From NCBI GenBank assembly GCA_030704615.1, contig CM060731.1:75454001-75518000 (forward strand): DNA of 64,000 bases, read 5' to 3'. A model generated the notes under the pieces. It saw only the letters and a program-made list of their open reading frames with translations. It had not been told where the DNA came from and did not search any database. Of the stretch, positions 14,386 to 54,606 are shown piece after piece. The translations under genes were made by a program, and so were the position numbers. The first letter of the stretch is position 1. Each line of letters begins with the position of its first letter. Source of the stretch: Takakia lepidozioides (lineage: Eukaryota; Plantae; Bryophyta).

Positions 14386-16104
14386 AGAGAATACTACCTG
14401 AACAATTTTGGAGCCTCACAGTGGCTATGCTGTGGTGCTAAGTCACTGTCGCTTACAGTTAAACAAGCTAGGAAGTTGAGGTTGCACTAACAGCTTCTGT
14501 GTCTGCCCTGATGCCACTAAGTGACTCAGTGTTGGCCGTTAGGTGAGGCCACAGTAGAGAGTATTAAGTAACATGCTGCTTGGAAATGCAAGTAAGCAAC
14601 AGTCCTAAGTCAAGACATTTCTAGTTAGGTAGACCAAACCCTTCAGTGTAGGTGCGGGAGAGATGCTTGTATATATGCTCTATTTCAACTCAGCAAAACC
14701 TGAGACTGGTAACTAAGGATCATGACATGGAATTGGGGGCCAATGAAATGTGTGTTTCCTAGGGTAGTTTCAGTTTGCTGTTGTGCTCTGGTTCTTATAT
14801 TCTCTGTAGTTCTCTCCTTCCCCCATTCTGAGCATCCCCTTCTCTATTTTCACAGATCAGCCCTCCCTCAGGACATCCCTCTCAGCAATGTATTGGGATA
14901 AGGTATAGCATGTTGATATGCAGGTTATCAAGCACATTACAAGAATGTCCACTCTCCGCAAAGCGGCAACTTTGGCCCACTCGGTACTAGGATTTGGCAG
15001 CATCCATGAATTGATGTTATAGACAAGGAAAGCGCCTAGCAAGTGACCAGATTACTAGCAGTCATTGTGTAATTAGTTCTATATTATGTACTGGATGAAG
15101 CTCAGCAGAAGTACGGTTGCAAACAGTGGCACATCATCACTAAGATGGTTTTGATGGTTTCTGAGTGGATCTGCGGTGGTGAAGTAGGTGAAGGTAACTT
15201 GAGGGGCGACTGACCTGTGGGCATGGCAAGTGGAGCTAGAAAGCAACCATGTCTTTGGGCTTTGCCAAAACTGCAATCACCCTTGCCCCACCAGCTTGTC
15301 CACAACCCCATATTTTCTCTCTACTGTAGGAAGTAAGAACCCATTTGGAAACTGAGGTGGTCTGGCATGACCATGGATCTTGAGCTAAACCTCTACAGGA
15401 TGTTCATCTAGGTGCTCCTAGCAACCACAGTCGTTGAGTGACAAACACATGGTGAGCATGGGCAGCTTATCTTTGGGTTTCCCAGTGCAATGCAACTCTC
15501 GAACAGGTGATAAGATGAAAAGGTGTAGCCCACGCCATGCTTTTCCCCCAATCCGTTCGAGATCCTCCCATGTGGACTCATTTCCAAGGAGTGCGCTCTA
15601 CCGGATGCCTCTTCTCTCCAATCTTCATCTTTGAATTCTTGGGTGCCGACAAGGAACCAGATAGCTGCTCCCTCTTCTCGCTCGAAGTATTCAGGGAGTC
15701 TTTGAAGATTTGATTGGTTGCATCCTGCTGCTCCTGGTAGGCCATCTCACGAGACTTTTCTTTCTTGGGCGCCATTCCAATATTTCTGTACAGATTTGCG
15801 AGAAATTCAGTTAGCTCTCTCGCCCTCCCCCTGTCCTGCTGCGCGTCTCGTTTCCGGACTTTTTCTTCACCAATTGTTTTCTTCCTTTAACTACTTTTCG
15901 CCGCCTTCTGGTTGGTGGATCCAGGGTGCTGCGACCTCTACCAGGGAGAAGCCTGATCCCTACAGAGAATTCCACGAGTTTGAAAATTAGAGAGCGTTTA
16001 CTGAGAGGCAACAATGTTTCTTAGTTCCCTCTCAACTTCATATTGCTTTCCCCCTCTCGATAGCGAATGTTCGTGGAACGGTCAATGAGTGCGTCTATCT
16101 CCTA

Positions 16105-30084: not shown

Positions 30085-31543
30085 GACTACCGCTTACCGA
30101 AGATTAATCAATGGAATGTACAATTGTGAGAAATCTGACGGGGTCTGGTCCTGGCCCGCCCTTTCATCCTCAAAATCCTAGGAATTCGACATCAGAAGAG
30201 GGAATACAACCGGGGAAAACTCCTCAATTTCTTTCGAACTACTTCGCTCGGAGATACTTGTATTTGGAGGGCTAAGTTACGGGAGAGACAGAGAAAGGAG
30301 ATGAGAGAAGGAGAAAGCAAGACTATCTCGAAGAATTAGATAATGGTAACGCCCATAAGACGAAGATTATGTCGAACAATTAGAAAATGGGTAACGTTGA
30401 GAAGACAGAAAACCATAGATCTCAGAGGATTCCTCACCTGCAGCTACACAAGGAGATTCAACGATCATGTGGCGAGCCAAGGAGATTCTCAGCGCATACA
30501 GAACTGGAGAGACGAACACGTATTACCTCCACACGTGCGGGAAGGGCTGTACTTTTAACTTGTTCATTCCCTTTACTTGTTTATTATTTTTCTGGACTCG
30601 AGTCCCACTTTTCGTTATACTTTTTATTTTTTGTTTTGTTAACAGGATCACTTTTGCCTTTTCTTTAATATGTCCACCATAATAATTGAAACTTAAATAG
30701 AATAGAAATGATATTCTATTCGTTTATCCATTTTATTGAACTTTATGTAATAGGAAATAGGATTTTCTTTTCTTTTCTTTTCTTTTTTTTAGAAAAGGGG
30801 ATTGTTCCATTTGTCTGTTACAAGATGACCGTGCCACCTCTAGTTTTGTTTTTTTGTTGTTTTTATACTAAGGGAACACAAGAACACACAACACACCCAC
30901 TTTATTTTTTAATATCTTTTATGTAGATCATAAATTAATATTTAGAGATACCATAGATTCTTCTTTTCTTTTGTTTCTTTTTTTTCTTCCTTTTTTTTCT
31001 TGAGCAGTAGGCTCTGTAAATTCACTGGATGTTAAAAAACTTTACTTAACCTTACCCTCTTTTGAGAGTTGACTCTGGCACTGGATTGGTTGTAGGGCGT
31101 GAGATACAACCAAAAACATTTTAATCGATTATTTAGAGACAACTGGAGCATGCTGGTTGGTGGAAAGTGTCTACTTTACAGCTGGTAAAGTGCCGGCTTA
31201 TGTGCTTTTACTCGCTTTTACTCGATGCTCGTTCTGCGTTCATCCATATTCACATATGCATCCAAACTCTTAGAGAACACGTTCCCAAGCACGACTCTGG
31301 ATGTACGGGGTGAGACATTAAATTGGTGCACTTTACGCTACTCCGGCTAGTGAAATATTGCCACTTGTCAAATAGGATTCATATACGACATGATACGAAT
31401 GGCCAGCTAGCACATAGGAATTAGATGTATTATTTTAATTTATTATATTATATTATTTAGATATAAGCAAAATATTTCCCTCGATCGGCGGTTAGGATTA
31501 GATGGGGTGGCAGAGCCGGATTGCAATGGACGGCTGTTGCAAG

Positions 31544-31623
31544 CTCTCTCTCTCTCTCTCTCTCTCCTGTGGCCTTCCTTGCTCGTCTCCGCAGCTGCCT
31601 CTCTCTCTCTCTCTCTCTCTCTC
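31544..31623. repeat. Paired (CT)n microsatellites
   Basis: Two CT runs separated by about 30 bp, upstream of the endonuclease-like gene. Confidence 0.8.
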
Positions 31624-31953
31624 CACTTTGGCATCACATTTTACGCCTCCCGTCTCCAGGGGCAGCTTCTGATCAACACTTTGGCTACTCTTTCTTCCTG
31701 TATTGGGCCCCTCTTGGGCACACGATGTACTACTTGAGTATGAAGACAAGATTGCGGATGATCATGAAAACAGTCATTCACAACATTTGGAAACCTGAGA
31801 ACTATAAGTCTACCGACGACTACTCCATTGCAAAACGATGTGAAATATTCTATGCTGACTCTTTTGAGTTCTCTCAGCAGTCCTGGTAGATAGTACGCTT
31901 TCTAAGCAAGTGGGAATGATCAACTCGAAGGAGGTCGCAAGTACTAATGCAAA

Positions 31954-34900
31954 ATGCCCGGTGTAAAATATAGTGACAAAAGTCGTGATTCTCCCTCAAG
32001 TATCTTGCAATGCATATTTTGGAATGTTCAATCGATTAGCGGGAAGAAACATGTGAGACATGTACAAGAGTACATTGCACGAAGGCAGGTAATCATGCAT
32101 GCACCCCATTCAATGCTTGAGGTAATCAACATCCAAATTTATGGCATAGACTTTATCTTGATCTAGTTAGGTCTTGGTAAAGCATAGTATGGTTGCCCAA
32201 GGAGGAATTGTTTTCTTTAAGTACCGCGGTCGTCATCTACAAAGTTATTGAACGCATGAACCAGAATTTAGAAGCATATACCTTTCGCTAATTAATTACA
32301 GTATGGAGAAGGCCCAAGGTATTGCAGTTTTGAATTATTGACACTGATTCAATTGATTTTTGTATATATCACCTCTTGACTCTTGCAGTCATATAGGCTC
32401 TCTCTCTCTCATGTTTCCATCCCTATTCCGAACAGTGTATCAACTCAGATCAGTATCTTGACTCAGAGACATGTTACTATTTCGTGAGGTAGCATAGCAA
32501 TGTAATTATCAAGTGTGGTGGTGTTACTGATGTGTGGAAATAATTTTCAGGTGGATCTACTCTTTCTATCTGAAACATGGCAGCACAAGGGTCAACCTCT
32601 TCCTCAATTACCGGTGCAAACCCATTATTGTTATGATTGTTATCTATCGTGAAAAGATTAAAATCATGTTACTTCCAATCAGCTAAATGAATCTGTGAAC
32701 CGTGGGCGCAATTAAATACTTATATCTCAATTCTGGACTCTTACAAACTTTGTTTATAAATTTGCTCAATATTGAAAAACATTATGTAACGTTGGTGTAT
32801 GATGATGATAGTTATAGATTGCATTTGAATTGCTACAGGGCTATGACCTCATTTCTTGTACGAGTGAACCAACTGGGGGCAGTGGAGGAGTTGCTTGCTA
32901 CTTCAAGAAAGAGTATGAACCTTATATCTCATTGTACAAAAAAGACCCTCATGGGCATTATCTATGGTTAAAAATCGACCAGGAATTCGGATTCGAGAAG
33001 GACTTGTTTGTAGCAATTTGTTACTATCCTCCAAAATCTTCAACTGCTTATAAGGACCGCGACAAATTAGACCAAGGGTTTCCATTTGAGAATTTGCACC
33101 AAGACATTAGTTTCTTCACAAAGACTGAAAATAACAACGATTTCTTTGTGGTTGGAGATTTCAATAGTCGGATAGGGGATGCACAAACCCAAGAAGCTTG
33201 TCGACATGGGCTTTCCCGAGAGTCTGCAGACAAAAAGACCAACACATTTGGATATCTGTCGGTTAAACGACTTGATCATTTGCAATGGCGTTACACAGGT
33301 GCCAACTTTTATACCACTTTCTATCCACATGTGCTTAGTTTTTATTTAGGATGTTGTCTTCTGCAAGCAATGAACCACATGAAGGTACCTGTGTAGGAGT
33401 TCTAAACTTCTGTTCTGGTGGCTTAATGTACAATTTGGCATTCATGATTCTTGTGCATCCACGCGGTGCATCATAGGTGTGGCCCAACTCAGGAGATACC
33501 ACTTGCCGAAACAGGAGTGTAGTGGATTATATATTAGCACCAGTTTCCAAGGCCCGCTACCTAGTAAGAGACATTGACATTCTCCCATTAGAGAAAAAGT
33601 CAGATCACAATGCATTGAACTTCACATTGAGACGACAACTTAAAAATCCCAACATTAAGATACCACATGAAGATGGACCAAAACCACATGGCCCACCTCA
33701 ACATCGGGACGAGGCTTTACCTGCAAGCATCATAGAAGTTGATGAAGTAAACCTTAAATGCCAAGCTCATGCAGAAGAACTTATCTTGAAGAAAAATAAA
33801 GACAACCATGTCGTCAAAAAGAATCAAGATGGGGGTGTTTCAGTAAGGGTTGAAACCTTAGGATATATCTCAGATATATATATGGAACGTTTAAACAATC
33901 ACAGTGGCTTGATGCTGAATTTACTACGGTCCCAATTCACCGGCATTGACAAATTATTTTACAATATTATCTCAACAATGCAAGAAAAGTGTGTAGCTTG
34001 GAAAGAGCAGGATGCACATTTACATGGAAGTATTGTAGTGAGATCTAGGCTTACTTCCTTCAGTAATCTCAACAGTGATATGTTTGGTCGACAGCTCAAC
34101 ACGGTTCAACCTTTCCCAGTTCTCGAGTTGGGAGCAGCAGCATTGGTAGAGGCAAGAACAACTCGGTTGCTCAACAAGATATTGACTAACAGTTTGGGCC
34201 TCAAAGACCAAAACATGAAAATCAATCATGGAAATATTGGTAGCCACCCTAACTTTTTATCGTACAGAAAGGGATACATGACTCGAAATTTTGAACCTCG
34301 TCGTGCAACTTCTAAGGCCACTCCGTTACCTGATAAGAAGGTACTTGGAGATGGTTTAGGTTGCAAAGAATGGAACCCAACAGTCGAAGAAATTATCAGC
34401 CATGATCCCATTTATCGCTCGGACAAAAGAGAACTAATGACAATCAATTCCCGTCCTGCATCGGTGGCCTCTCCAGGGCTGGTACAAGTAGCTAGGTAAT
34501 TTTACTCATGAATCCTTTGTAGCAGGTATATTGGAATTGACTGAACTGTCTAATAGTAGGATGAATCATTCAGATGATTATAGTCAATAACTACTCACTA
34601 GATTTTTTCGAAGCATTGCAAACATGAAACATCCCGATCAACATATCTCGAAACACATCAGTTCAATTTTAACACTCACTAATCGTGGTGGGTGGTTCCA
34701 TAGACTGTATGTGCGAGCTGATACCTCATGTCGGGGAGCGAGTAGTGACGGCTCAAGAATGACTACAGGATTTTCCACACCCAAGGGACTCCAAATTGGG
34801 GCTGGATTTCGATGCACTTGTATGTCTCCTGGACGAGAATTCCAAGTATATCAGCCCACATTGAGCAAGGTGGGCGGTGCCATGACTGTAGTTGAAGACA

Positions 34901-35016
34901 CTAACAGCTTCTTCTCTCTCATACGAAATCTAAAATCGGCCTATGCATCTGGAAAGCTTTGGAAAACCATAGCTCAGTTTAAGATTGCTCGTGACCTTGT
35001 GAAGGCTATTCGTTGA
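31954..35016 (+). pseudogene. Intron-containing gene: LINE-type APE/EEP endonuclease fused to an unassigned ~400-aa C-terminal region; one frameshift near 33248
   Basis: Exons 31954-32088, 32551-32613, 32839-33298, 33477-34495 and 34602-35016, all GT-AG. Motifs in order: FWNV, DLLFLSETW, GGVACYFK, YYPP, VVGDFNSRIG, LDICRLNDLIICNG (shifted frame), VVDYIL, SDH. Confidence 0.75.
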
Positions 35017-35552
35017 CATGATCATGATCTATCATCCATTCAAGTTTAATATTATTGAAATTACATTTGATCACTTCTAATGTTGCACTGGTAATTGCCT
35101 TCAAAATGTTAGAACAAAGGCAAGGCCCACAGAGGTTTGAGTTGCAACCATGGTCTGAGCAAGTCCTCAAGCATCATTGTCAAGAGGTCCAGAGGAGTCC
35201 CTCCAAAGTCAGCGTAACTAAGAGCCCCTGCCTCTCTGTTTGGGGTGAGGGCCTGTATCATGATCAAGTAAACTTGAGCAATTATCAAGGTTAGGTATGT
35301 ATAGTGTCACAATAACATGAATTTGAATTTTTCCTATACTTCAATTTCATTATATATAATTAGTTCTATTGGCATCTGTGAGTGACCTATCCTTTAATTT
35401 AATACAAATCATATAAACCAGGGCCTCTGTCCCCCTGTTTATTTATTTCAAAAACAAATCCCATAAATTGATAGAGAAAAAAGTGAGAGAGGGATAATGT
35501 CAAATCCAGTGCAACCAGCAAAATTTCTTTTTGATTGATCATGGGTACTTAC

Positions 35553-38393: not shown

Positions 38394-41300
38394 CACTACG
38401 TTTGGGGGGGGGGTTAGCGATGCCTCAGCGACCTCCAAACGCCGCGCGTAGCGACGGAAATACACTACAGCTCGCCCGGGGCATGCCGGGGGCAAATGGC
38501 GACGTCGGGAAGTCGCCGCCACGTCAGTCCGACGTCGCTCTCGGAACGTCGCAGATTAGCGACCTCCGGGAATCGCTAATCCCCTGGGCCCCCTGGCCAC
38601 CAGGTCAGCGACGGCGGAATGTTGCCGACTCTCCGGGCAGTTGCAATATTGCGACTCCCGGGCGACGCAACAATGGGGAAGGAGGGGGGGTCCATCCCTC
38701 ACCCTGCGTCCTAGGGCAGTCGCAAGGACGTCGCCCATGGCGAGAAATAGCCACGCGCCGGCGACGCCGGCACATCGCACCCTGGGACATTAAAGCCCCC
38801 GCTTTGCGATGCCTGGACATCGCAAATGGGGTCTATTCTGCCTAGGGGACTGGCGACGCCCTGGAATCGCGATGACGTCGCTGCAATCTGGGGGCGTCGC
38901 TAGACCCCCATGGGTAGGGAGGTTTGCTGGCGACGCCCGGGAATCGCAAGGACGTCGCAACCCCCGGGGGCCGTCGCTAGCTCCATGGGAGGGCACATTT
39001 GTATGTAACTCCCTGGAGTCGCAACAACGACGCCACCCGCATGTTGCGACGCCTACGAATCGCAAGAGCGTCACTGGTCGCGCCGACGTCGCTGGGGGGG
39101 GTGGGTGGGAGGGTAGCCAGCTGGTATTTGGGGTGGGGTTTTGGGGGTTTTTTTTCGTTTGGGGGGGGGGGGGGGTTGGGTGTGGGGTTTTCTTGGGGGT
39201 TGGGGTGGGCCTCGTGCTTGCAAGAATTGCATGCATTCTAATCTATAGGTCGGTACATCAAATCCACATGTCCATTAAGTTTAGAATGAGGATCGAAATG
39301 GCAACTAAAAATATATATACATAAAGCGAGTACCACATGTACATGTCTCTAACTGGGAACTATCCCTCACTCCTCATCACCTGAGTCATAGGTGTACTCG
39401 TCCGAGGAATGCAAGCTACGTTGGGCCTCCAATAGGATGATGAGGCCGAGTCCGAGATTACATCATCCTTCGAACCACCCCCTACTACTGGCTCTCCCCC
39501 ATCCAGCCAAGCCACTGAACTACCCATCCCCACCCCTACAGATGCACTATCCTCCGTCAATTGTGGCGTCTTGGCCATTGAGGCTACAAGGACCTTCCAC
39601 CCCTGAGTCTTGCAAAAGTTGTGCTTGACGGCGGAGAGAGGCCTCTGAAACTTCTTTTTCTGCACAGGACATACAAATGCAATGACAGGTCAGAATTCAT
39701 TTAATGGAAGGGAGAAGCTAAAAAAGAAGAATAGGTATGACAAGAGAAAGAACACTTACGAATCGGGTGACAAAACTCTTGCTTCCACCGGGGCCCCACT
39801 TGTGTATTGCGAAGATCTCTGCCTTCAGCTCTTCCCTCTCCCTTGCGATGAGAGCCTCCCAAGATTCCTGTCCAGCCCCAACAAAGATACTATAAATGTT
39901 AATGAACTCCATACCGCAATGAACATGCATTCAAAGACGTCAATGACAAAGTGAAGTGCGTCTTACCTTGGCTATTCTATGTGGCATGGTCGTTGGTTCG
40001 GCGAATGGTTTGTCGCGCACGGTACCTCTTGTCCTTGAGGTTCTTTCCCACCAGCTCCAATAGCTTCCCCTCATTCCACTCACCCGGAAATGTGCCCTCA
40101 AGTGCTTGCACGAATGCTCGCCTATGGCGATGTGATTGGCGTGGCCAATCAACATGCCAAGGGAACCACCTCGCCGCCAAGTCGAAGGCTACTTTTTTCA
40201 TGGCCTCCCAATACTCACCAATGGGGTCACCGACCTTATTGGTCTCTAAGGGCGGCACCTTCATCTTTGGCAAATCAAGGTTGCGGGGACCCGAGGTCTT
40301 TACCTCATCCATGCTCTTCTGAACTATCTCTCCCTTGTCTTTTGTAGCTTGTATCTTCAATTGCTATGATGACCAATGTGCTCCTTGTCATGGAAACATA
40401 CAGACAAATAATCTGTCTATTCCTATCAGGAGCTTGTTATCCTTGTTAGCAGGGCAGACAAGCACGTTGCTCAAGGCTGTTTCAAAGATGCTTGGAGCTA
40501 AGGTGGTTGTAGCGTGGCATAGGAGGCTGTCATTGAAGCTATAGCTACTCAGCTGGCCAATGGTTTTCACAGAAGCGTCGGATATCACGAGCCTAAATAG
40601 GCAAACAGAGGCCCTTGGGATTGAGGGTTGGTCTAACCATCCTTGGTGGAAAGCAGGACCTCCACTTGCTATGGTACAACGTAGAGTACATTTTCAAAAT
40701 CTTCCTGATTATGAGTCTGGTCAAAGTTGGGTTATAGACAAATTCAATTATCACCAATAATTGGCTTGTCTTATGGGAGTCTCCAGGGGGAGTTGACAAG
40801 AACCCCGCTAGTGCCCTCCACCGGTTGCACGCTCATCTGAACTAGCTCCCCCTTGTCTTTTGTTCCCCATTAGTGCCCTCCCCTGGCTGCACCTCTCTCC
40901 TTCTACGCCTCTTTCTCTTACGCTCCCTCTCCTGGGCTTGTCCTTTCCCCCTCCCCTCAACTACTTCCCTCCCCCCCTCCAGTCATTCCCTACCCTCCTT
41001 GATGATTAGGGGAACCTCGGGGACACGACGTCATTTCCTCTTCCTCTTACCATCCCCAAGGGTAGGCACCGCCACTATCCCTACTTTGTCGGTGGCAATC
41101 CCACTGCCTGCCACAAGCTTAGCCACGAATTAGCCAAGCTCCTGAACACAAAACCCACAAAATTAGAAGCAAACCAGAAACAAAATGAAAGGCAAAGGAA
41201 AGAAAAAAGGTGAAGGAAAGAGGCTCACATTTGCGTCCATGACCTCAATGTTGCCATTGGTCCCCGCTTGTGGTGCACCCCCCATAAGGCCCTCTCGGAA

Positions 41301-47788: not shown

Positions 47789-48607
47789 ATGGAGTCGGCC
47801 TTTCACCCAGAAACAGATGCCCAAACAGAAAGGACCAACCGTACAATTGAAGATATGTTGAGAATGTACGTTGGTGAAAGACAGTCCTCTTGGGAACAAT
47901 ATCTGTATATGGTGGAATTTGCTTATAACAAGCATTTCCACAGTGCCATTGGCATGAGCCCATTTGAAGCTTTATATGGACGAGATTGCTTAGCTCCTGC
48001 TTCGCTTATCACACCACCATCAAATGTGCAAAGCGTGAATGACAGAATCAAAGAGATCCACTCTGTCCTAGATCTGGTGAAGCGTAGTATGCAGGCTGCA
48101 CAAGAACGGGCCAAGTTCTTTGCTGATAAGCGTATGACTTTTCGTGAATTTGCCATTGGTGATATGGTGTTTTTGAAAGTTACACCTAAAAGAAGCAATC
48201 TAACACTAAGCAAGTGTTATAAGTTGTCACCAAGATTTTGTGGTCCGTTTAAAATCCTGGAACGCCATGGCACAGTGGCCTATGAGTTGGATCTGCCTCC
48301 AACATGGAAGATCCATAAAACTTTCCATGTCAGTCTTCTTCGGAGGTATACGTCGGACTCATCACACATCTTGCCGACGTTGCCTCAAGCCATGAATGAT
48401 GGTCAGCTGATGACTGAACCCGAAAAGATTCTAGAAACGCGAGTAAAGCACCTGTGCAACCGTTCATGGAAAGAACATTTGATTAAGTGGTTGCATTACC
48501 CAGAGACACAAGCTACTTGGGAGAAGGAAAATGAATTGACATTGAGTTACCCCTCATTTTCTGTCATTGAGGACAATGACCTGTCTTTGGGAGGGGGAGT
48601 TTGTTAG
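47789..48607 (+). mobile_element. Ty3/gypsy chromovirus 3' fragment: integrase C-half + chromodomain + PPT + start of LTR
   Basis: SAFHPETDAQTERTNRTIEDMLR, EFAYN, SPFEALYG, GPF motif, FHVSLL, chromodomain (LIKW..YP...ATWE). PPT GGGAGGGGGAG at 48589-48599, then TGTTAG at 48602. Confidence 0.92.
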
Positions 48608-50765: not shown

Positions 50766-53700
50766 AGACGGCGTCCCCTCGTCCGTTGATCAACATTAGA
50801 TCAATGGTGTGCATGCTTTTCATCATGTGCATCCATTCTGTTCATGCGCAGTGCATCCAGTGTCCTCAATCATCGTGGCATGGCGCTCAAGCAACGTCTT
50901 ACTTGATGAATGTTCTTCTCATGCTGACTGTTCATACTACATCCATCCTGAACCAAGACGAACATCCTTTGCTTCGTTCATCCGCGTTCATCCTCCTTTA
51001 CTTACGTTCACCCTTCTACTGTTCATCCAGTTCGCCTTGCCTCTTCGCTTGTTGTCTCCTTCCCCCGCACACTCTATACTCTACATGCGAAATCCAAGTG
51101 TGTTTCTGATAACCTGTTTTCCCCTTACAGGAGCTCATGAAGCCAGTATCAAGGAGGAAGAACAAACAATGGCGGTGCCTCATCTAGACCTTCATTAACC
51201 TATGAGCAACGCCAAGAATGTTATCAGAAACTAAGAGAGCTCAAGAGACGCACCAGGTGCAAATCTGTGTGGCAAATACAACATTGGGTGAGGGAGTGCA
51301 CTGAACCAGAAGGAAAGAGGCCATACGTTGCAGTTAAACTAGAACATGAGCCAGTTACACGAGCCTTCATGGCTAGCGTCACAAGCACAACTTGTCACGA
51401 ACCACATGTTGACGGTGAAGCCTAGTCTTGGTATGCCGATAGTGGAGCATCTCAGCATATGATTGACAATCGACATTGGTTCAAGAATTTTACAGTCATA
51501 CCAATCGGTCAATTACCGGTGCAAGCTGTTGGGAATCACACCGTATGGGTGACTGGACGTGGTGACATTAAGATACTCACACTCGTGGAGGGACAGTGGG
51601 AGCCAGGCATTTTGCAGGATGTCTTGTATATGCCAGGATTGAAGCGCAACCTGTTCTCTATAGCACGTATCACTCATAAGGATGTGGAAACTGTTTACAA
51701 CAAACATGGTTGTGAAATGAGGAGTGGCAACACTGTCGTGATGGAGGGAGTTCTAACGAACATGATGTTTGAGCTCAAGATCAAGGTCATAATACCACAA
51801 GTGCTACAAGCAAATTTTGCTGCATCACTGGGCACCAGTTCAACTGCAGATGGGACCCAAAGCTTGGAACTATGGCATTGTAGACTCGAACACCTCAGTA
51901 CTGCCATGATCAAGAAAATGGAAACCATTGCCATGGTTGTTGGTCTGCGAGTTAAAAATAGCACTGCAGGTACTACCCTTTGTCATGGCTGTGCCTACGG
52001 CAAGAATCGTTGAAGAAGCTTCCCAACGAATATGGACCACAAAGAGGGACAAAACCAGGAGAAATTTTGCACACAGACGTGTGTGGCCCCATGAACGTCG
52101 ATTCTGTTGGAGGAGCAAATTTGTACATAGTCGACAGTACTTTAAGGTACTATGTACTATTCAAGGATGATAGCACAGCCTATTGCTTTGTTTTTGGTAC
52201 TCAAAGGAAGTCAGAGGTTCTTTCAGAAACTACTTCGACAAATTCACACACTCAACATCGCATTCGCATATTGAGAAGCGACCATGGTGGAGAATACTTA
52301 AACAAGGCATTTGAGCCGTTTATCAACAATGAGAACATTCGATACGAACTATCTGTTGCCTACACCCCTGAGCAGAATGGAACTGCAGAAAAGGAGAACC
52401 GTACCATTGTGGAGTGCATCAGGAGCATGCTTCATCATAAGAATGCTCCCCTAAAGTTTTGGGGTGAAGTGGTGAACACAGCCGTTTACATCCTTAACAG
52501 GACCAGCACCAAAAAGCAGCTTGAAGGAATGACGCCATTTGAGCATGGACCGGAGTAAAGTCATCAGTGGAGCACATGAGGACATTCGGGTGTGATGCCT
52601 ACGTTCATATTCCTAAAGCTCTACGCAAGAAACTGGATGCAAAGAGTAAGAAAATAATCTTTCTTGGATACTCAGACGAGAGCAAAACATACCGTGTTTG
52701 TGACATAGAGAGAAATTGTGTCATCACAGTGAGAGACGTGATTTTTGATGAATCATCTCCACAAGAGCCACGCTATCATACTGAAACAAAGTTTGTTGGC
52801 AATCAAGTTACACTCCTATATCCAACAAATGCGGAGATTGTGAACAATCACAGTGATGCCCTAGAGGAGGAATCTCGAGTTGATACTACCAATCCTCCAG
52901 CATCACCTGAATTGATAGTTGACCTACAAGTTGACCTACGGATGAAGCTGTAACGCCACAACAAAGTCCTACACTTCTGGACATGGCCATGGTGCCATCG
53001 CTGCCACATCGCAGCAAGAAGCCACCAGCTCGATACGGAGAATGGATCTATCATAATCAAGAGGCTCCAAGTGCATTTGCTACTGAATCCATTGAGATGC
53101 CCGATGAACCACAGATGTACCATCAGGCCACACAATCTACGCACGCTGCATAGCGGCCAATGGCCATGACCGATGAGTTCGATTATTTGATTAAGAGTGA
53201 AACCTGGACGTTGACAGATTTGCCGCCAAGACACCATGCTGTAAATTGCAAATGGGTGTATAAACTGAAATTGAAGTCTGATGGCTCAATCGATCGGTTC
53301 AAAGCGAGAGTTTTGGCTAAAGACTTTACACAGCGAGAGGGAATCGACTACCATGAAACATATGCACCAGTGGCACGTTTTGATTCCATCCGTGTTGTTT
53401 AGCAATTGCTGCCATCGAGGATATGCACATGGTGCAATTTGATGTCGAGACTGCATTTCTCTATGGCGAAGTCGATGATGAGATTTACATGGACCTAGCT
53501 CCAGGATTCATCGACGACTTCCTGGTCACACATCATCTCACACATAGTACAACTCACACATAGTACAACAGACCCTTGCGATATATATTTCAATGCAACA
53601 TAGTCGTGAGCCGCAATTGATATAGCCGCAATTGATTGTCACTATTTTTGTTGATGACAGTATCAGTACTTCCCGCATTCAGAACACCATTGCGTCAATG

Positions 53701-53823
53701 GATGATGTCTTTGAGATAAAGACGGGAGTTCCTGATTGTTATGTTGGTTTACGCATCATCAGAAACCGAGCTCTTCGTCTGCTTTTCTTAGATCAACAAG
53801 TATACATCGAGCGCACAATACAG

Positions 53824-54245
53824 CCAAAAGACCGGATGGGTTTCCGTGGAGAGGTGCAAGGGAGAGAACCCCAGCGTTCATGCAGACGCTCTTGGAGTCA
53901 TGCAGCCACCATTCTGCAAGGGTGGTCGACCTCACACTATCCACACGTTCGTTGGTTCAATACTGTTCCCATTTTTGAGTTCTTCCGGTTTGCATCCGAT
54001 TTGGAATCCTCTACAACATTCTTGATGCTTTCTGTCTTGGCAGGTGCGACTTATCGACTTATCGTGTTTGCAAGGTTGGCGGGAGAAGCCTTTTTGGCAT
54101 GGAGGGCGACACCGAACTATTCAAAAGTGTCCTCCTCCCTCTTGTGTCTGGCTCTACGTCTGGCACACAGACTGAACAAATTCAAATCAGAAATGATGAG
54201 GATACCGAGGATAAGCAGGTCGACAACGACATTTCATGTGAGTAA
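53824..54245 (+). pseudogene. Intron-containing C-terminal fragment of a beta-class N4-cytosine/N6-adenine DNA methyltransferase, inserted in copia RT
   Basis: PWRGARERTPAFMQTLLESCSHHSARVVDLTLST, then a 97-nt GT-AG intron (53947-54043), then (R)ATYRVCKVGGRSLFGMEGDTELFKSVLLPL after removing an 8-bp duplication GACTTATC. Spacing parallels N6_N4_Mtase motifs X-I-II (KP..L...LI...S..GD.VLDPF.GSGTT..AA...GR..IG.E.D). Confidence 0.55.
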
Positions 54246-54249
54246 GTTT

Positions 54250-54606
54250 GTCATGGAACTGTGATTCCAGTTTGGGTGCATGTTCAATTGCTGCCTTTGG
54301 TGATGCAACCATGCACCTCTTTGCATCTGGTAGTCTGACAAGCATTCACCTTGGTACGATTCCAGCTCTGAAGATGTCGCCATGTGGACCTCTTTCCCCT
54401 TTTCCAAAGCTGCCAGGGCAGTGTTCAGATTGACATTTGGTACAATTCCAGCTTTGATGATATCCCCATGCACCTTTTTGCCCTTCTCCAGGCCAGCTGC
54501 CAGGCATGCACAAGCATTGCAAATGCACACAAACATGTTGTGCTTCCCCCATCATTTGCTCATAGCTCTCCAAAGCCTCCATTCCACATCCCTGCTGTGC
54601 ATACCT
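54250..54606 (-). pseudogene. PLS-class PPR gene fragment inserted in copia RT
   Basis: GYAQQGCGMEALESYEQM..FVCICNACACLAAGLEKGKKVHGDIIKAGIVPNVNLNTAL..ALEKGKEVHGDI; frameshifted. Confidence 0.8.

Follow-up and report, generated by a model that had tools for sequence, protein, structure and literature searches.

A probable moss gene family built on a domesticated LINE endonuclease, with a likely disabled copy in Takakia lepidozioides

Host genes that derive from transposable elements are well known, with DNA transposases and the gag, protease and integrase of long terminal repeat (LTR) elements among their sources. An APE-type endonuclease domain can also travel with elements of a different kind: in Helentrons, such a domain follows the Rep/helicase protein of a rolling-circle element. 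In vertebrates, sequences of LINE-1, a long interspersed nuclear element (LINE), are reported to have been domesticated as protein-coding exons (PMC12129022). Our literature search found no description of a spliced, constrained host gene that consists of a whole catalytic LINE endonuclease without its reverse transcriptase (RT). Here, we describe positions 31954-35016 of a 64,000-nucleotide stretch of the moss Takakia lepidozioides (assembly GCA_030704615.1, contig CM060731.1, positions 75,454,001 to 75,518,000 of the forward strand), referred to as the window in the following. We consider it likely that this locus is a copy of a low-copy gene family of the moss lineage, in which a domesticated LINE endonuclease (EN) is combined with an orphan module, and that the copy in the window has become a pseudogene.

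The locus comprises five open pieces on the plus strand that carry the expected nuclease motifs in order. A previous sequence-only reading of this stretch had assembled the motifs of the EEP (endonuclease/exonuclease/phosphatase) superfamily, to which APE belongs, across several exons. This assembly holds: the motifs are distributed over open frames in four GT-AG-bordered exons, with WNV in 31954-32088, SETW in 32551-32613, GG(V)A, CYYPP and GDFNSR in 32839-33252, and VVDYIL and SDHNA in 33477-33635. WNV, SETW, CYYPP, GDFNSR, VVDY and SDH follow each other in the window exons and are kept in the homologous loci L001, L003 and L007. The catalytic pattern of the superfamily (Asn, Glu, Tyr, Asp-x-Asn, Asp and Asp-His) is complete, and the reading frame of the window copy is broken between GDFN and DY. 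In our Pfam scans, which were run on separate exon pieces, the exon-3 piece matched PF03372 with E=7.6e-5 and 23.0 bits; this lies just below the gathering score of 24.5, as would be expected when the query is a fragment of the domain.

The exons are separated by four GT-AG introns. In the window, L001, L003 and L007, these occupy the same codon positions in the same phases, and they range from 118 to 1228 nt in length. Three of them lie within the EN domain, as had been proposed, and the existence of homologues with the same intron positions is thereby established. The Physcomitrium patens locus L018 also matches the window in five exon blocks; together, these homologous loci stand for four deeply diverged lineages besides that of the window. 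Two borders of the earlier gene model needed to be moved. Its exon 3 donor is not conserved, the conserved donor being located at 33298|33299, and the frameshift in exon 3 of this copy had been missed. Its exon 5 start at 34602 keeps the frame but lacks conservation, and the acceptor conserved in L001, L003 and L007 places the start at 34704, which is also in frame.

Judged by its sequence relationships, the nuclease is LINE-type. In an exhaustive profile search with an alignment of exon 3 against 1.84 billion representatives, three clusters of the family itself (E<1e-30) were followed by a gap and then by LINE ORF2 proteins, starting from E 2.5e-17. The RT domain RVT_1 lies downstream of the EN in all of the long non-family matches tested (8/8); among the shorter matches tested, 8/10 carry PF14529, the family 'Endonuclease-reverse transcriptase', and 2/10 PF03372 only. 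One of the matches is an EN+RT transcript of Psilotum nudum. Exons 1, 2 and 3 as well as the first 53 codons of exon 4 are colinear on uninterrupted LINE EN domains; for instance, exon 2 aligns to residues 33-52 of the LINE protein P0010, and the first part of exon 4 to residues 198-253 of P0017, the EN+RT protein from Psilotum. Identity to EN+RT proteins is 31-40%, and none of the 18 top representative matches examined has the look of a cellular enzyme; leaving aside fragments of the family itself, the matches checked are LINE-type EN domains. In these searches, the nearest kin of the EN are EN+RT proteins of LINEs, and it falls outside the cellular EEP families. A profile search of the PDB with the exon 3 alignment (E<=10) found no EEP chain, including the solved EN structures of L1, TRAS1 and R1, and returned two weak matches only, both to unrelated proteins. 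The style of the (S/T)ETW and CYxPP motifs presumably fits the CR1/Jockey/I-like groups better than L1. In the annotated proteomes searched, the family is absent except for a partial P. patens model.

In its behaviour, the family resembles a host gene and not a mobile element: its loci are fixed, its introns and a motif upstream of the gene are conserved, and its protein is under purifying selection. A scan of Joint Genome Institute (JGI) metagenomes yielded six loci, five of which represent one collinear locus. L001 and L013-L017 are largely collinear over ~12 kb, with few indels, 95-97% DNA identity and the same neighbours, such as an eIF4E gene downstream. Among these close orthologues, the exons are free of indels and stops, all indels being intronic, and the ratio of nonsynonymous to synonymous substitution rates (dN/dS) amounts to 0.30-0.46 overall, with lower values in the nuclease. 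Thus, two of the features that mark a domesticated gene, a fixed orthologous locus in related taxa and purifying selection, are observed.

Over larger distances, DNA and translated comparisons of the window with L001-L004 and L007 show the exon blocks and the short upstream motif as the main conserved DNA. The proportion of synonymous differences (pS) among four deep lineages is 0.70-0.89 and hence saturated; the corresponding proportion of nonsynonymous differences (pN) is 0.14-0.20 in the nuclease and 0.22-0.34 in the conserved C-terminal blocks. The window branch, with a pN of 0.16-0.20 for the EN and 0.30-0.34 for the C-terminus, is similar to L001 and not lengthened. At the protein level, a word search with a piece of exon 3 retrieved five short 'hypothetical proteins' on metagenome or Logan contigs, and a word-index search with the exon 4 product of L001 (418 aa) matched only itself.

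The window lacks the hallmarks of a mobile element around this gene. There is no RVT Pfam match on the open reading frames (ORFs), and the RT parts of eight LINE proteins match nothing in the 64 kb, in agreement with the sequence-only reading, which had noted the absence of an RT. It had likewise noted that a poly(A) tail is missing; indeed, no A-rich stretch follows position 35016, and the window copy is not flanked by terminal repeats, either inverted or direct. The neighbouring ORFs tested have no Pfam match near the gene, and hence no transposase, Rep or helicase. In sum, the locus shows neither the properties of an autonomous LINE (a downstream RT, an intronless structure, a tail, a target-site duplication and many copies) nor those of a Helentron or another APE-carrying DNA transposon (Rep/helicase or transposase, and defined termini). 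Pieces of LTR retrotransposons are present further along the plus strand of the window. The piece at 47789-48604 is the tail of a Ty3-type integrase with an SH3 and a chromodomain and resembles elements that flank the P. patens locus and L005, and the piece at 51459-52555 is of the Ty1/copia type with gag-pre-integrase and rve domains.

Downstream of the nuclease motifs, the sequence-only reading had postulated a single domain of ~400 aa. A C-terminal region does exist, yet it falls into three parts, namely the last ~53 aa of the nuclease, a linker of ~170 aa and a conserved portion of ~220 aa. The linker, which directly follows SDHNA, shows little conservation and many gaps (alignment A2), and the conserved portion forms two blocks that straddle intron 4. 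Block 1 is characterized by the motifs VAWVExKTTRL, KKGYMTR and LMTINSRPxxVxPPGLVHVAR, and block 2 by LYVRADxSCRG..DGSR..GFRCTCM..LKSAYDxGKLWxSITQFKIA. No relatives of this C-terminus were found in Pfam, down to E=10 with pieces of the window, L001-L003, L018 and the P. patens protein P0185, nor in sequence and profile searches of the PDB or in a feature search of the ESM Atlas. Likewise, comparison with 149 LINE-type matches, using hidden Markov models and phmmer to look for a decayed linker or RT, gave no match, and the C-terminus is not recognisable as a decayed RT or LINE linker. An initial assignment of RxD..CRG..R...GFRC as the tail of an FGE-sulfatase-type domain was dropped, as it had no Pfam support. 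AlphaFold2 did not yield usable models, with a confidence (pLDDT) of 35 for exon 4 alone, where the linker stays below 50 throughout and some long helices are predicted, and of 42 for exon 5 alone.

In the copy in the window, exon 3 lacks 14 bp at ~33248-33251 that are present in frame in every homologue (alignments A1 and A3), and it measures 460 nt compared to 471, 474 and 510 nt in the homologues, all of which are multiples of 3. In the homologues, a single frame leads to the donor CAG|GT with the consensus ...KTNxFG(L/M)(P/S)L(L/M)D(V/I)C..NDLI(I/V)CNGVTQ|; in the window, the conserved DICRLNDLIICNGVTQ is still encoded by 33251-33298, only in a different frame. With splicing from the conserved donor CAG|GT at 33298|33299, which has remained intact, the frame would be lost and a stop encountered early in exon 4, as read from the sequence. 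The window copy is therefore most likely a recently disabled one, a pseudogene, since its conserved splice sites shift the frame and lead to this stop. The lesion looks recent because the rest of the gene is open and the branch is not lengthened; the exons other than exon 3 have an undecayed look. Read-derived Logan contigs of run X1 agree with the window sequence without differences, the deletion included.

The features of the copy are listed in Table 1, and individual exons can be followed across the family. For exon 1, the context of the ATG, the CIYWNV(R/Q)SISGKK block and the CAG|GT donor are kept in L001 and L003; the block and the donor are kept in L007, and in P. patens (L018) the block is present with an ATG upstream. 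Exon 2 has a length of 63 nt in the window, L001, L003 and L007, with its AG| and |GT borders kept. The first part of exon 4 shares 77-89% protein identity with L001, L003 and L007, and exon 5 shares 53-58% with the same three loci and 50% with P0185 of P. patens. Upstream of the gene, the conserved motif is 89% identical to L003 over 54 nt, compared to ~73% for the exons, and it also precedes the gene in L001 and L007, at 0.5-1.25 kb from the ATG. It has no Rfam match, and an Rfam search of 31300-35300 gave nothing credible. The motif, which is followed by a CT-rich tract, probably represents a promoter or 5' untranslated region of the gene. This tract is a (CT)n microsatellite at 31536-31631, directly 3' of the motif, and another one is found in intron 1 at 32398-32410. 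The Logan contigs end at the first of the two.

Table 1. Features of the gene copy and its upstream region, in window coordinates
Feature	Position	Strand	Description
Upstream motif GGCGGTTAGGATyAGATGGGGTGG...	31484..31535	+	conserved non-coding
Exon 1	31954..32088	+	45 codons, phase 0; start codon and WNV with catalytic Asn
Exon 2	32551..32613	+	21 codons, phase 0; VDLLFLSETW with catalytic Glu
Exon 3	32839..33298	+	nuclease core: GGVACY, CYYPP, GDFNSR; 14-bp deletion at ~33248-33251
Exon 4, first part	33477..33635	+	nuclease end: VVDYIL and SDHNA (catalytic Asp, Asp-His)
Exon 4, middle	33636..34136	+	~170 aa linker, indel-rich, poor conservation; open in the window
Exon 4, last part	34137..34495	+	conserved C-terminal block 1; ends at AG|GT donor, phase 2
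Exon 5	34704..35016	+	conserved C-terminal block 2; stop codon 35014-35016

With P. patens, the family extends to a model moss. A word search with the exon 5 alignment led to LOC112279722, annotated as an 'uncharacterized protein' of 176 aa (P0185), for which our literature search found no paper that mentions it. The locus (L018 7889-10681; CM009316.2, about 9.31-9.33 Mb) contains all five exon blocks; the NCBI annotation covers the last 176 aa only, with the blocks of exons 1-4 located upstream of the model. LOC112279722 corresponds to the end of exon 4 and to exon 5 of the same family, and the AG|GT donor of exon 4 is also the donor in its NCBI gene model. With regard to expression, this model of the 3' part is the one indirect hint. 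In contrast to the window copy, its linker is not one open frame and has many stops in the expected frame. Its exon 5 start lacks nine residues, and LTR retrotransposons flank the locus. Consequently, the annotation can be corrected, and P. patens offers a place where the function of the family is open to testing.

We propose the following history for this family. The ~280 N-terminal residues would represent an entire APE-type (EEP) endonuclease domain of non-LTR (LINE) retrotransposon origin. After its capture, three spliceosomal introns would have been gained inside the EN domain and a fourth one further on, and the EN would have been joined, via a variable and probably flexible linker, to the conserved ~220-residue C-terminal module, which has no recognisable relatives. 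Intact orthologues are predicted to encode, most likely, a metal-dependent DNA-nicking or phosphodiesterase enzyme, and targeting is probably the task of the C-terminal module, which would bind a partner or nucleic acid. More tentatively, and with somewhat less than even confidence, we suggest that this domesticated LINE EN with its introns and orphan module may serve as a host gene for targeted DNA nicking in those moss species that have an intact copy, for example in repair, recombination or retroelement defence. The sequence-only reading had proposed a domesticated nuclease fused to a lineage-specific partner, and this is supported for the family, given its LINE kin, shared introns, selection and fixed locus as well as a C-terminus that resembles neither LINE linker nor RT; the copy for which it was proposed is frameshifted in exon 3.

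Several observations weigh against this interpretation. No synteny between the deep lineages was found in the available flanks. On other metagenome contigs, L005 and L009 are truncated EN-only copies, and the wider set of EN-only copies, L005/L006 and L009-L011, is truncated or rearranged. Such repeated decay within the family weakens the case for an essential function. In L003, L007 and P. patens, the frame of the exon 4 linker is interrupted, which may reflect an extra intron or decay; attempts to rescue the linker frame in L003, L007 and L018 with a single intron produced hundreds of formal solutions and are hence uninformative. In P. patens, SDTW replaces SETW and DC replaces DY. Regarding the frameshift in the window, its read support may stem from the assembly's own sample. 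A 4,001-letter query against the runs X1, X5, X6 and X7 was placed on DNA contigs only, and the two presumed RNA runs lack the stretch. In addition, donors that keep the frame do exist, namely TCG|GT at 33261|33262 and AAG|GT at 33384|33385, both of them non-conserved, and a shortened or altered protein may arise from these alternative donors. Finally, both nuclease activity and a targeting role of the C-terminal module are predictions from the sequence. Taken together, the family is old and constrained, and individual copies die.

In the truncated copies L005 (1402-2701) and L009 (3168-4551), a fragment of exon 3 lies 5' of exon 1, and exon 3 is internally deleted or frameshifted. The C-terminal blocks were not found within these two contigs.

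The use of an alternative donor would keep the window copy alive, in that a lineage-specific splice site bypasses the 14-bp deletion and gives rise to a slightly altered nuclease with its C-terminal module. We consider this unlikely. In its favour, the other exons are open, neither the start nor the stop nor any conserved splice site is damaged, the window branch has a pN similar to that of L001 and no excess length over the others, and GT sites that restore the frame exist. Yet the frame-keeping solutions remove or garble the near-invariant segment LLDxCxxNDLIICNGVTQ: the frame-keeping donors always drop it, and it is kept by the family as well as by LINE EN domains, in the latter as '...LLICNG'. 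Moreover, the conserved donor CAG|GT at 33298|33299 is the stronger one and, being intact, would compete. At the other extreme, the locus could be a decayed LINE whose RT has eroded and whose 'introns' are chance interruptions. This would fit the LINE-type nuclease motifs and the broken frame of exon 3, but it is scarcely credible given that the GT-AG interruptions of the window recur in L001 as well as in L003 and L007 with the same position and phase, that close orthologues have indels in introns only, that dN/dS is far below 1 and that no trace of RT similarity is found downstream; the comparisons of selection, indels and introns already contradict it.

The remaining alternatives concern the family as a whole. 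Cargo of an undescribed DNA-based element was the second option offered by the sequence-only reading, and a gene that acts as the cargo or the enzyme of such an element would explain the scattered decayed copies, i.e. the truncated or rearranged ones at L005/L006 and L009-L011. The lack of flank synteny between deep lineages also accords with this idea, as do the LTR retrotransposons found around the P. patens locus and, in the window, 13-17 kb downstream. We nevertheless regard it as quite improbable, as the gene is not bounded by terminal inverted or direct repeats, the similarity between homologues is made up of the exons and the short upstream motif and stops short of the flanks, and the neighbouring ORFs tested contain no Pfam family of a transposase, Rep or helicase. 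The copy number is low, with five of the six loci in the metagenome scan being one collinear locus, the flanks are collinear in close relatives, and saturated synonymous sites combined with a conserved protein fit long vertical descent. An origin of the nuclease outside LINEs, as an old cellular EEP gene that resembles a LINE EN or is kin to the ancestor of these domains, strikes us as highly unlikely. The spliceosomal introns and the promoter-like conserved motif would suit such a gene, the pieces score below the Pfam gathering thresholds, and the PDB profile search missed the solved LINE EN structures; that same search, however, was devoid of any EEP-family chain and gave just the two weak, unrelated matches. 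Furthermore, the best non-family matches are EN+RT proteins with 31-40% identity and not cellular enzymes, and the absence from annotated proteomes, bar the partial P. patens model, fits a narrow, recent lineage better than an ancient cellular gene.

Beyond the gene, the window, which is nuclear DNA, contains further features. At 2093-3070 (+), an ORF containing ETR1_N (E=8.5e-32) and GAF domains represents the first exon of an ethylene receptor and identifies the genome as that of a streptophyte; apparent ethylene-receptor matches in the search for synteny were gone once the low-complexity filter was switched on. A tRNA gene (Rfam RF00005, 70.8 bits) is located at 8964-9035 (-), and a B-lectin fragment is also present. 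The GC-rich region at 38715-39033 (up to 65%) harbors direct repeats of 75-77 bp, which belong to the families D4 and D5, and the ORF at 53632-54261 has no Pfam match at E<=0.01. Lastly, an isolated similarity of 56 aa (41% identity, E~1e-7) connects L003 8912-9079 with window 15608-15775 (-). On the L003 side, it is part of a 124-aa ORF 3' of the gene, and on the window side, it lies 16 kb upstream on the opposite strand; either a gene common to both or a repeat may account for it.

If our interpretation of the family is correct, it would represent the first domesticated LINE endonuclease gene in plants, as far as the literature searched goes. If intact orthologues are active, they would raise the questions of what use a plant makes of the DNA-nicking domain of a retrotransposon and how introns are gained inside a retro-derived domain. 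For the window itself, the message is more modest: its copy has very probably been broken recently.

Among known systems, the closest is the APE endonuclease of LINE ORF2 proteins (PF03372 / PF14529), with which the moss gene shares the ordered motifs WN, (S/T)ETW, GG-A, CY-PP, GDFN-R, -DY- and SDH. Unlike LINE ORF2, the moss gene has neither an RT nor an ORF1 and carries three spliceosomal introns in the domain; it resides as a low-copy gene at a fixed locus and is connected to an unrelated C-terminal module. Its EN is not close to the solved EN sequences of L1, TRAS1 and R1, for which the PDB search came back empty. With cellular EEP enzymes, such as APE1/ExoIII, TDP2, the CCR4-type deadenylases and DNase I, it has the superfamily fold and the pattern of catalytic residues in common, and metal-dependent phosphodiester cleavage is probably part of its chemistry because fold and residues are shared; their sequence relationship to the moss gene, however, is much weaker than that of LINE EN domains. 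Helentrons (Helitron2) resemble it in having a LINE-like APE domain outside a retrotransposon, but the moss EN is N-terminal, and the ORFs tested around the gene contain no Rep or helicase. Finally, the LINE-1 exons of vertebrates are, like the moss gene, LINE-derived coding sequence co-opted by host genes; they are reported as pieces added to existing genes (PMC12129022), whereas in the moss family, a whole EN forms the core of the gene.

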